Shown here one piece after another: positions 33,050 through 51,567 of a DNA stretch of 64,000 nt. Source of the DNA: Selaginella moellendorffii (taxonomy: Eukaryota; Plantae; Lycopodiophyta); contig NW_003314297.1 of assembly GCF_000143415.4 (NCBI RefSeq), positions 744,001 through 808,000 on the forward strand. Reading direction: 5' to 3'. Position 1 is the stretch's first letter. Each line of letters opens with the position of its first letter. A program made the position numbers and the translations under genes. The notes beneath the pieces are model-generated. The model searched no databases, was not told the DNA's origin, and saw only the letters and a list, made by a program, of their open reading frames with translations.

Positions 33050-35114
33050 ATGAGCACAGCGTCCATTCTCACGCTCTACTCCACCTACATCAGCTACGGC
33101 TTGCTCTTCGTGCTAGGTCATCTGCGCGATTTGTGCCGCTCGATCCACAGGGCATTCTTCGCGATCAAGGACGCGAATCCGCCGGTAAGCATTTCTTGAG
33201 GCCGATTTGAGCCGGATCCCTGGATTTCTCGCTTGCTCTACAGGGATATGCGCCATTGTGTCGGAGCTATGAAGATTTCTATGCCAGGCGCTTATACCAC
33301 AGGATCCAGGTAATATTTCGCTGGACTGGTCTTGGTTTTAGATTTCTTTTCTCTTTTGTGAAAGGATTGCTTCAATCGGCCCATTGCGAGCGCTCCAGAG
33401 TCGTGGATCGATGTGATTGAAAGGGAGTCTAGCGATAATAACAAGACTTTACAGTAGGTGATAACTTTTTGTGTTTGGTACTTAGAATTCTCGTGCTTTT
33501 GGAAGTTTCTTTTCGGGAGCTTCCCTGATCCTTGGATTTTATTTTTTTTGATAGTCGGCCCTTCAAGACACGGAGATGTCTCAACCTTGGCTCTTACAAC
33601 TACCTTGGATTTGCTGCCGCTGACGAGTACTGCACGCCCCGGGTGATCGAGTCTCTTGAAAAATATGGTGCTAGCACTTGTGCTAGCCGTGTTGATGGAG
33701 GTAAAATTTCCGTGTTTTTCCTTTCTAGAAAGTACCTAACTTTATGCATTGCAGGAACTACATCACTCCATGTAGAGCTAGAGGAGTTGGTTGCACGATT
33801 CGTTGGCAAACCGGATGCAATGGTTTACGGAATGGGTTTCGCGACCAACTCAACCACACTACCAGGCCTTATTGGCAAGGTATGCTTTTTCTTTGTGGAA
33901 TTTATGTCGCAAGCTTATGGCATGTGGTAGGGAGGACTAATCATCAGCGATTCTTTGAACCACGCATCTATTATATTTGGAGCGCGTAGTTCTGGCTCCA
34001 AAGTGAAAGTTTTCCAGCACAACTGTAAGCTGTTTTACGTTTGCGTTTCTCACTGAATGCTGATACGAATTTTCAGCACCCCAGCATCTCGAAGAGGTGC
34101 TACGGGAGAACATTGCTGAAGGGCAACCTCGGACTCATCGGCCTTGGAAAAAGATAATTGTTGTCGTCGAAGGGATTTACAGCATGGAGGGGGAGATTTG
34201 CAGATTAAAAGAGATAGTGCAAGTCTGCAAAGCCTACAAGGTATTTTTCTCTCTAAATGTCTTCTAAAAACTGTTGGAACAGGCATACGTGTACCTTGAT
34301 GAGGCACACAGTATAGGCGCCATTGGAAAGACTGGGAGAGGAGTCTGCGAGCACTTGGGCGTTGATCCTGCTGATATAGATGTGATGATGGGTACGTTCA
34401 CAAAGTCTTTTGGTTCTTCCGGGGGATACATTGCGGGATCTAAAGTAAGACAACTCTCTCCTGGTTATTGTGACTCATGGATGAGAATATCTTTGCAGGA
34501 CCTTATCGCATATTTGAAGAGCATTAGTCCTGGCCATATGTACGCAACCGCAATGTCACCTCCCGTTGCGCAACAAGTAATATCGGCCATGAAAGTCATA
34601 ATTGGTGAAGATGGCACTGATAGGGGTACGTCTGCTTGCTTACAGAGACTCAGATACCTTATGGAATGTTTCATTCAGGTGCCCGAAAGCTTGCTCAAGT
34701 ACGAGAAAACAGTAACTATTTCCGTCAGGAGCTACGGAAGATGGGATTTGAGGTCCTGGGTGACAGAGACTCTCCAGTTATGCCGATTATGCTTTACAAT
34801 CCAGCAAAGATCCCCGCCTTCAGTCGCGAGTGCCTCAGGCGAAATGTAAGTCCTTGCAACTTTGAAGCGGAAGTCCTGATTTTTCTTTCTGTTTTATAGG
34901 TGGCTGTTGTGACTGTGGCCTTTCCAGCGACACCCTTACTCCTAGCCCGAGCCAGGATATGTATTTCGGCGTCACACACCAAGGAAGACTTGGAGCAAGC
35001 ACTAGAGGTCCGTACGTGGTAAAATCCCTTCCGAGTCTATAACCACGTGCTGTTGTTGTCCAGGTTATCAGTGAAGTTGGGGACCTGGTTCACATCAAAT
35101 ACTTCAAACATTGA
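33050..35114 (+). CDS. LCB2: Serine palmitoyltransferase subunit 2 (long-chain base biosynthesis protein 2)
   Basis: [16 protein letters not shown]; [14 protein letters not shown]; MGFATNS; SDSLNHASI; [10 protein letters not shown]; PLP-lysine motif GTFTKSFG; [10 protein letters not shown]. Confidence 0.96.
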
Positions 35115-35164
35115 CACAAAAGTCCTTGCTTATGTACAAAACTGGAGACCGCAAACTTTCTCTT

Positions 35165-35746
35165 CTACTCGCTGTCTTGGGACGCTTTGTCCTCGGGAGC
35201 TGCAGTGCCAGTGTCGTCCTTTCTCAAGAGGTCATCTGCCTGGAGTGTGGCCTTGAGAGCCTCGGCGAGCTCGCGATCAAGCTCCTCTGCAAAGTTCATG
35301 TCGTCATCGTCATCCTAGTCGGGAATTCACAGGAGAAAATGCAAAGTTATCAGGAAAGAGGAACGATTTCACTGCTAGGTACCTCGTCCGCCTCGTCGAG
35401 CGCCTCCTTGGGCTGCTCGCTCGTTGTGTTGGCCGTCTCCAGTTGCTTCATGGCCTGTGTGTAAATGCTCTCCTCTACCTGGGGAATGAAAGAAACAAAG
35501 AACACGAAGAACACATTGGAATGGAAGTTGAATCTTCATACCTGTAAGTGGTGTAGCTGGTTGAGAATTTTTTGCTCGATTTGACACAGCCGCTCGGCCT
35601 CGTCTTCCAGAAGCCTGGTAACAGCAGCAAGAGAAACAAATGAAAGGCAAGAGATATTTAACTTACTTGAGCATATCAACTGGGCTCATGGAGTCCATAG
35701 GCCCGGTGCCCATGCTCTCCACGACTGCCTGCTCGGACTCCATCAT
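35165..35746 (-). CDS. 132-aa acidic coiled-coil protein, SNAPC5/SNAP19-like (exons 35746-35667, 35614-35542, 35478-35383, 35314-35165)
   Basis: Manually spliced with canonical GT-AG introns and consistent phases: MMESEQAVVESMGTGPMDSMSPVDMLKLLEDEAERLCQIEQKILNQLHHLQVEESIYTQAMKQLE...DDDDDMNFAEELDRELAEALK...QDSE*. Confidence 0.7.
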
Positions 35747-35979
35747 CTAGGGTTGCAGCCAAAGCAACTGCTAGGGCGCGCCACGTCATTTTATTTTTTC
35801 AATTTATCTTTCTTCCCAGTCTTGAGACCGTCGAAACAAAGAAATGAAGAGAAATGTAGTGTGGAAAAACTATACATATGAATCTAATGTAGTGTTTGAA
35901 AGCTCGCATTATTTCGTCCAGCCTCGACAGGTCAAGCACGCTGTGTTCCTGACGACCGTATCGACTTGTGAAGATGAAA

Positions 35980-37225
35980 CTAAGGCAACAATCCCTTATC
36001 TCGCATATCGGAGACTGTGTCACACAGCATTCGTTCGAGTGGTATGTCGAATTCAGTAATCAGCTCCATGATCTTCTTCTTTCCCATTTCCTCGGGATAC
36101 AAGCCGTATTCACTCAAACCGCTCGTGTCAGCAACGCACCTGGCGTTTCCAGCTTTAATAGGAACCCCGGAAAGGAAATGCTTACTCTTTTGGATATGGA
36201 AGCTGAGGGAACTTGGCCTTGAGAATCTCGATGATTTCCCTGTTGGGCACCAGACTTTCCACGCAGAGATAGCGGCCCGAGGCCTCCTCCTTGTCCATGG
36301 CCTTAATGTGAGCTTTTGAGACGTCTCTCACGTCCACAACTGGGATGGACACATCGGGATAGCTGCTTTGGCTACCTGCAAAACGAGACGTTAACAGGCT
36401 TCCCAAGCAGTGAAAACTTGGCACAAACCATCCACGAGAACCTTCAAGACCTCACTGCTGAAATTCAGCGTTGGCTGGAGCATCGGGCCAAACACGTACG
36501 AGGGGCAGATCGTGATGAGGTCAAGGCCGTACTCCTTGGAGAGACTCCACGCTAGCTTCTCAGACTCCGTCTTGGCTACCACATACCATTGCTTGAAACA
36601 AGAGTTCCAGTGAGTAAAGTCTACCATCGATACAGTTCTTTTACCTTGAGCTTCCTGCAGGCGTCAATGTCGGACCAGCAGCTCTCATCGACAATTCTTT
36701 CCCTAGGCCGATTCGGATCGATCAGAACTGCAGCCATGGACGACGTGACGATGACCCGTTTGATCCTCTCCTGTGCGCAGGCTTTCAAGACGTTGCGAGT
36801 GCCGGTGATTGCTGGCAGCAAAACATCCTGGGACTCAAAAACGAAGTCAGCCTTAACCAGAGGAAAGAAATGAAACAGGACATACAAACTACTTACATCT
36901 GGATTCTCAGGCGATATGGTTACAGGGCAAGCGGTGTGGAACACAACTTCACAGCCCCGAATCGCGTCAGCGATTGAATCGTAGTCAAGAACATCAGCTT
37001 TATGTAGTTTGAGTCTCTCGCTTCCATCCAGTTGCTTTAGATGTCCATACTTGGCGTTATCTGAAAGCCACCATCACTTGACAAACTAAGATAGAACAAA
37101 GATAAGAAAAAAGAACCTGGATCACGGACAGTGCCATGAACCGTACAGCCTTTCTTCAGGAGATCACGAACGATCCACGAGGCAATGAAACCACCAGCTC
37201 CAGTCACGCAAACTACCTTCGCCAT
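35980..37225 (-). CDS. Cinnamoyl-CoA reductase-like / DFR-family NAD(P)H-dependent reductase
   Basis: [13 protein letters not shown]; VFHTACPV; [10 protein letters not shown]; DESCWSD; WYVVAKT (YxxxK); [11 protein letters not shown]; lacks the NWYCY motif of bona fide CCR. Confidence 0.9.
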
Positions 37226-51486: not shown

Positions 51487-51567
51487 CGTGGACGGCAGGA
51501 TTCGAACCTGCGCGGGCAAGCCCACATGATTTCTAGTCATGCCCGATAACCACTCTGGCACGTCCAC
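51487..51567 (-). tRNA. tRNA-Ser (AGA)
   Basis: rc = GTGGACGTGCCAGAGTGGTTATCGGGCATGACTAGAAATCATGTGGGCTTGCCCGCGCAGGTTCGAATCCTGCCGTCCACG: acceptor stem, anticodon AGA, long variable arm, TTCGAAT loop. Confidence 0.96.

Follow-up and report, generated by a model that had tools for sequence, protein, structure and literature searches.

We found that positions 35165-35746 of a 64,000-nt stretch of the Selaginella moellendorffii genome (the window) hold a genuine, independently transcribed nuclear gene, LOC112349158, with an allelic copy, LOC112345058. Judged from sequence comparison, its 132-aa product is probably a divergent lycophyte member of the SNAPC5/SNAP19 family, which supplies a small subunit of SNAPc, the transcription factor of snRNA genes, in human.

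Reading the region 35100-35850 by hand gave a minus-strand gene of four exons (80, 73, 96 and 150 nt) that together form 399 nt and encode 132 aa. The start codon lies at 35746, immediately preceded by a TAG in the same frame (35749-35747), and the three introns of 52, 63 and 68 nt all run from GT to AG and keep the frame. Without splicing, the reading frame meets a stop at codon 28. GC content was 51-60% in the exons versus 37-43% in the introns, and the lysine at the joint of exons 1 and 2 arises from a split codon, AA/G. The initial annotation had proposed four GT-AG exons joined in phase into 132 aa, and its coordinates, exon lengths and phase were all correct. The parts of the gene are listed here, with X1 to X4 denoting the sequencing runs described below.

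35667..35746, minus strand: exon 1, 80 nt, from the ATG at 35746; encodes residues 1-26 plus 2 nt; its N-terminal extension is rich in Met and, by prediction, largely disordered.
35615..35666, minus strand: intron 1, 52 nt, GTAAGT..CAG; joint 35614/35667 present in X1, X3 and X4.
35542..35614, minus strand: exon 2, 73 nt; residues 27-51; first part of the SNAPC5-like helix.
35479..35541, minus strand: intron 2, 63 nt, GTATGA..CAG; joint 35478/35542 present in X1, X3 and X4.
35383..35478, minus strand: exon 3, 96 nt; residues 52-83; starts with VEESIY, covers the rest of the long helix and continues into the acidic linker.
35315..35382, minus strand: intron 3, 68 nt, GTACCT..TAG; joint 35314/35383 present in X1, X3 and X4; retained form in X1 record 4 and in X2.
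35165..35314, minus strand: exon 4, 150 nt including the TAG at 35167-35165; residues 84-132; run of five D, second helix and acidic tail.
35302..35213, minus strand: predicted second helix, residues 88-117, within exon 4.
35470..35671, minus strand, spanning introns 1 and 2: residues 26-54, LKLLEDEAERLCQIEQKILNQLHHLQVEE, which carry the signal for the Pfam SNAPC5 family, PF15497.
35747..35979, minus strand: 5' flank, the putative promoter; it separates the ATG from the stop codon of the epimerase-family gene upstream.

A phmmer search of exon 4 against 1.84 billion representative proteins returned a single match, a 132-aa protein (P0001) that was 100% identical over residues 84-132. This entry is XP_024538768.1, "uncharacterized protein LOC112349158" of Selaginella moellendorffii, and its sequence agrees residue for residue with the translations of the four exons together with the junction lysine; we used it as the reference for the spliced protein in all later searches. 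The gene had been described as hidden, and it is indeed absent from the prokaryote-style track of open reading frames, but because RefSeq carries it as an uncharacterized protein it is better called annotated and unnamed. A second entry, P0002 (XP_024526699.1, LOC112345058), differs from P0001 at two residues, A67T and S131I.

Evidence for transcription came from a sequence index, in which 20 runs from 10 studies contain 46-71% of the words sampled from the gene's stretch, a share that corresponds to what is expected from exons without introns. We compared the contigs of four of these runs, from four studies (X1-X4), with positions 35000-36200. All three splice joints occurred in the contigs of X1, X3 and X4 (three studies), exactly at the predicted borders, so that the junctions anticipated in the initial annotation were each borne out; they appear as skips of 52, 63 and 68 nt flanked by CT..AC on the plus strand, with positions given after the stated cut shifts. 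The label "RNA?" attached to these runs is a guess; since the contigs lack the three GT-AG introns and contain spliced exons of both neighbouring genes, they derive from RNA. Unspliced pieces were also present (X2; X1 records 4-6) and represent pre-mRNA, intron retention or DNA carry-over. Between 35289 and 35568, contigs retaining intron 2 or intron 3 occurred alongside the spliced forms (X1 records 4-6, X2 record 8), and X1 record 6 showed five differences at 35510-35519, within intron 2, which might reflect a third allele or variation between strains.

The locus of P0002 (L001, scaffold GL377572.1) has the same gene order, namely an epimerase-family gene, the small gene and a convergent aminotransferase class I/II gene, and by this synteny represents the other haplotype. 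Comparison of the two haplotypes revealed 3 substitutions in 399 exon bases versus 4 in 183 intron bases, as well as 4 substitutions and 2 indels in the 233 nt of the 5' flank; exon 1 had no substitution. One of the exon changes, at 35288, was synonymous when read by hand, and both amino-acid changes (A67T and S131I) fell outside the long helix. These counts, which are small, fit purifying selection on the small gene. The RNA contigs contained variants from both haplotypes. Within the putative promoter, at 35799-35830, two indels distinguish the haplotypes, one an insertion of 9 nt (GAAAAATAC, after 35825) and the other of 1 nt, and here the RNA contigs match the version of the other haplotype.

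Upstream on the minus strand lies an epimerase/NAD-binding family gene of 322 aa, and from 35666 to 36139 contigs of three runs continue unbroken from exon 1 over the 233-nt spacer into it (X1 record 7, X2 record 9, X4 record 22), those of X1 and X4 even reaching its spliced exon. Such contigs would be expected if the four exons were spliced 3'-UTR or read-through parts of the epimerase-family transcript, with a fortuitous open reading frame and no independent coding gene, an origin that we rejected and regard as very improbable. Run X3 decided the matter together with the annotation: its depth was 137.6 on exons 1-2 against 2.3 at the end of the upstream gene, so the small gene has a transcript of its own, and three separate genes appear both in RefSeq and among the genes called for the other haplotype. 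Contigs that cross neighbouring genes are no proof of one single transcript, and those joining exon 1 to the upstream gene suggest read-through or overlapping UTRs of tandem genes. A fortuitous frame also sits poorly with three introns that all preserve it, with exons that have diverged less than introns between the haplotypes, and with a helix predicted at a pLDDT above 90.

By structure prediction, the product of this independently transcribed gene starts with a short disordered N-terminus, then forms one long amphipathic helix spanning roughly residues 22-71 and, after a disordered and acidic linker, ends in a second helix (88-117) and an acidic tail. AlphaFold2, run on the single sequence, gave a mean pLDDT of 73 and placed the long helix at residues 22-71, with a pLDDT above 90 for residues 21-60; the D/E-rich stretch at about residues 72-88 was disordered or of low pLDDT, and the second helix at 88-117 was followed by a disordered acidic tail. 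A long N-terminal amphipathic helix of the coiled-coil-bundle type is what SNAPC5 would lead one to expect, and it appears here in both the AlphaFold2 model and the Pfam alignment. SNAPC5 also combines a small size (about 100 aa) with a C-terminal region that is acidic and disordered; the same is predicted for the Selaginella protein, at 132 aa, which differs in its extra helix at 88-117.

Among 24,736 Pfam families, the top match of P0001 was PF15497, SNAPC5 (E 0.0011, 19.8 bits), with residues 26-103 aligned to profile positions 5-89 of 101, and PF15497 was likewise the best family for P0002 (20.1 bits, E 0.00089). The curated gathering score of this family is 23.6 bits, so both alleles fall 3.5-3.8 bits short, and the profile search suggested in the initial annotation thus returned the expected family as the best one at scores beneath its cut-off. 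Restricting the query to a 39-aa core (residues 24-62) left PF15497 as the sole Pfam match, at 16.6 bits, with residues 26-54 on profile positions 5-33; this gap-free alignment upholds the register that had been proposed for the core and locates the signal in the QLxxLxVEE motif noted there. The acidic tail was considered as a cause of the match and rejected: the match is independent of it because the tail fragment, residues 63-132, matches no Pfam family. Fragments 20-75 and 1-83 scored 17.5-18.4 bits with HAUS-augmin3 against 17.3-17.7 bits with SNAPC5, and this tie means that coiled-coil background reaches that score level. Human SNAPC5, as quoted in the initial annotation, shows 11 identities in 32 residues by hand count, which taken alone is within what chance would give for coiled coils.

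Protein language-model features pointed to the same family. When the ESM Atlas was searched with the whole protein, PF15497 was carried by 11 of the 20 nearest clusters, among them the closest three, with 198-209 of 256 features shared, the typical same-family range of the tool, and with scores of 0.90-0.91, 0.9 being reached by 4-10% of shuffled proteins according to the tool's own figures. For the core at residues 20-82, the nearest cluster was a 57-aa Streptophyta cluster of which 11% of the members carry PF15497 (score 0.88; 199 features shared), and an 87-aa Streptophyta cluster ranked third. The language-model match may stem in part from shared architecture, namely small size, a helix at the N-terminus and an acidic tail.

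Other searches returned no specific relative. Sequence searches of the PDB, run once for the full-length protein and once for the helix, found no SNAPC5 chain at E ≤ 10 in a PDB copy that possibly contains none, and gave coiled-coil noise at 12-14 bits. Foldseek against the PDB yielded nothing specific, its one augmin match (E 1.6) being meaningless for a long helix, and the Atlas search by structure retrieved unrelated helical proteins. Word searches of 5.8 billion protein clusters (lengths 73-231 and 42-133 aa), with the whole protein and residues 7-82 as queries, recovered P0001 itself alone; the exon-4 phmmer search likewise found no relative besides P0001, and a word search with a 54-aa open frame around exon 3 gave no candidates. 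Pfam and PDB searches with single exons had no match because queries of 24-49 aa are too short and intron 2 divides the motif.

These empty searches bear on the alternative that the gene is real and its product a lineage-restricted, small, acidic coiled-coil protein unrelated by descent to SNAPC5, its matches being convergent and due to an L/E/Q/K-rich heptad-repeat composition, small size and an acidic tail. We consider this possible, if rather doubtful. It would account for a PF15497 score below threshold, for fragments on which HAUS-augmin3 scores as high as SNAPC5, for PDB sequence and fold searches that bring up generic coiled coils alone, and for the failure to find a relative in either the clusters or the representatives; a PF15497 protein also went undetected in the four angiosperms in the table of Girbig et al. 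Convergence of this kind would, however, leave it to coincidence that two methods and the prior guess of the initial annotation all single out one family among about 25,000, that PF15497 is the sole match of the minimal 39-aa core, that the shared features lie within the same-family range, and that a moss has a PF15497 member. Generic coiled-coil proteins (HAUS-augmin3, PF14932, and SOG2; Rabin8/GRAB and lamin in the PDB) resemble the Selaginella protein in their L/E/Q/K-rich, heptad-type composition and reach similar fragment scores, but they are large and match over arbitrary internal segments, and none of them matches the core at 24-62 or is favoured by the feature search. The resemblance to SNAPC5/SNAP19 put forward in the initial annotation is partly supported, in that PF15497 ranks top for both alleles and its Atlas clusters come first, and is qualified by the score below the gathering value, by the HAUS-augmin3 tie on fragments and by the empty searches for relatives sharing the QLxxLxVEE motif. 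Assignment to SNAPC5 is likely and stays below proof, and for the long helix the most likely reading is homology to the N-terminal helix that is conserved in SNAPC5/SNAP19.

Set beside human SNAPC5/SNAP19 (UniProt O75971; PF15497), the Selaginella protein has in common a small size, a long N-terminal amphipathic helix and an acidic C-terminal part, with profile positions 5-33 lying gap-free on residues 26-54. It differs in its length (132 aa versus the 101 positions of the Pfam profile), in a 25-residue Met-rich N-terminal extension and in the predicted second helix (88-117); its score lies under the Pfam cut-off and no pairwise significance was seen. For the acidic linker and the second helix, no counterpart was identified. 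A second comparison is SNAPc5 of Physcomitrella patens (Girbig et al. 2020, Supplementary Table 1), which likewise belongs to a non-seed land plant and has the same Pfam family assignment, so that PF15497 extends into plants. The moss protein passed the HMMER criteria of those authors, whereas the Selaginella protein is sub-threshold on the current Pfam model, and the two are likened by family assignment. The moss accession is printed as A0A2K1MI5, which is apparently incomplete.

Reviews and recent structure papers describe plant SNAPc as composed solely of SNAP190-, SNAP50- and SNAP43-type subunits, and SNAPC5 as restricted to vertebrates (PMC9652321, PMC12478075, PMC10533338). A three-subunit SNAPc is reported for Arabidopsis, Drosophila and C. 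elegans, with SNAP19 called non-conserved (Sun et al. 2022, PMC9652321); SNAPC2 and SNAPC5 have been termed vertebrate-specific (PNAS 2025, PMC12478075), and a review gives plant SNAPc three core subunits only (Plant Cell 2023, PMC10533338). By contrast, a search of 30-odd proteomes with an iterated version of the Pfam family led Girbig et al. (bioRxiv 10.1101/2020.06.29.177642) to assign a SNAPc5 homologue, in Supplementary Table 1, to Physcomitrella patens, Drosophila, Anopheles and vertebrates. The table has no such entry for Vitis, Arabidopsis, Zea, Oryza, C. elegans, fungi or protists, and this distribution goes undiscussed in their text. Our literature search found no paper linking SNAPC5 with Physcomitrella, or SNAPc with Selaginella in a relevant way. 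The initial annotation had described the subunit as not characterised in plants, which agrees with the reviews but overlooks the moss PF15497 homologue already tabulated in 2020; that entry is a precedent for SNAPC5-type proteins in non-seed land plants. The larger ancestral SNAPc proposed alongside is plausible, but for the same reason it is not new in kind.

The human structure offers a model for what such a subunit could do, since SNAP19 there forms a rod module of long helices with SNAP190(1-143) and SNAP43(148-268) that has no DNA-binding activity and supports the stability of the complex (PMC9652321). By analogy, the Selaginella helix (residues ~26-60) would give one strand of a coiled-coil rod, pairing with the long helices of the SNAP190-type Myb subunit (at its N-terminus) and of the SNAP43-type subunit, that is, plant SNAPc4 and SNAPc1. 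A rod of this kind might stabilise SNAPc on the promoters of snRNA genes while making no DNA contact itself.

At slightly under an even chance, we tentatively propose that non-seed land plants (mosses and lycophytes) have a four-subunit SNAPc including a SNAPC5-type rod subunit, that SNAPC5 predates the split of plants and animals, and that it was lost or diverged beyond recognition in seed plants. If true, this would contradict the usual view of a three-subunit plant SNAPc and a SNAPC5 confined to vertebrates. Taken with the entries for moss and insects, the lycophyte SNAPC5-like gene suggests that the small rod subunit is ancient and has been repeatedly lost or overlooked, and the Selaginella protein, if a homologue, adds a lycophyte to the tabulated moss precedent. 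The gain is modest: human SNAPC5 is dispensable for transcription in vitro and accessory, the homology is sub-threshold, and the moss came first.

On its other side, the small gene faces a plus-strand aminotransferase class I/II gene whose product is 477 aa on the other haplotype and which looks like serine palmitoyltransferase. In the region 35062-35314 the stop codons of the two convergent genes are about 50 nt apart (about 35115 versus 35165), and contigs with the spliced last exons of the aminotransferase gene extend to 35287, a position within exon 4 of the small gene; either the two 3' UTRs therefore share sequence and form a natural antisense pair, or unstranded contigs merge them. Farther away in the window, a tRNA-Ser gene (anticodon AGA) occupies 51487-51567 on the minus strand and is the sole Rfam match.
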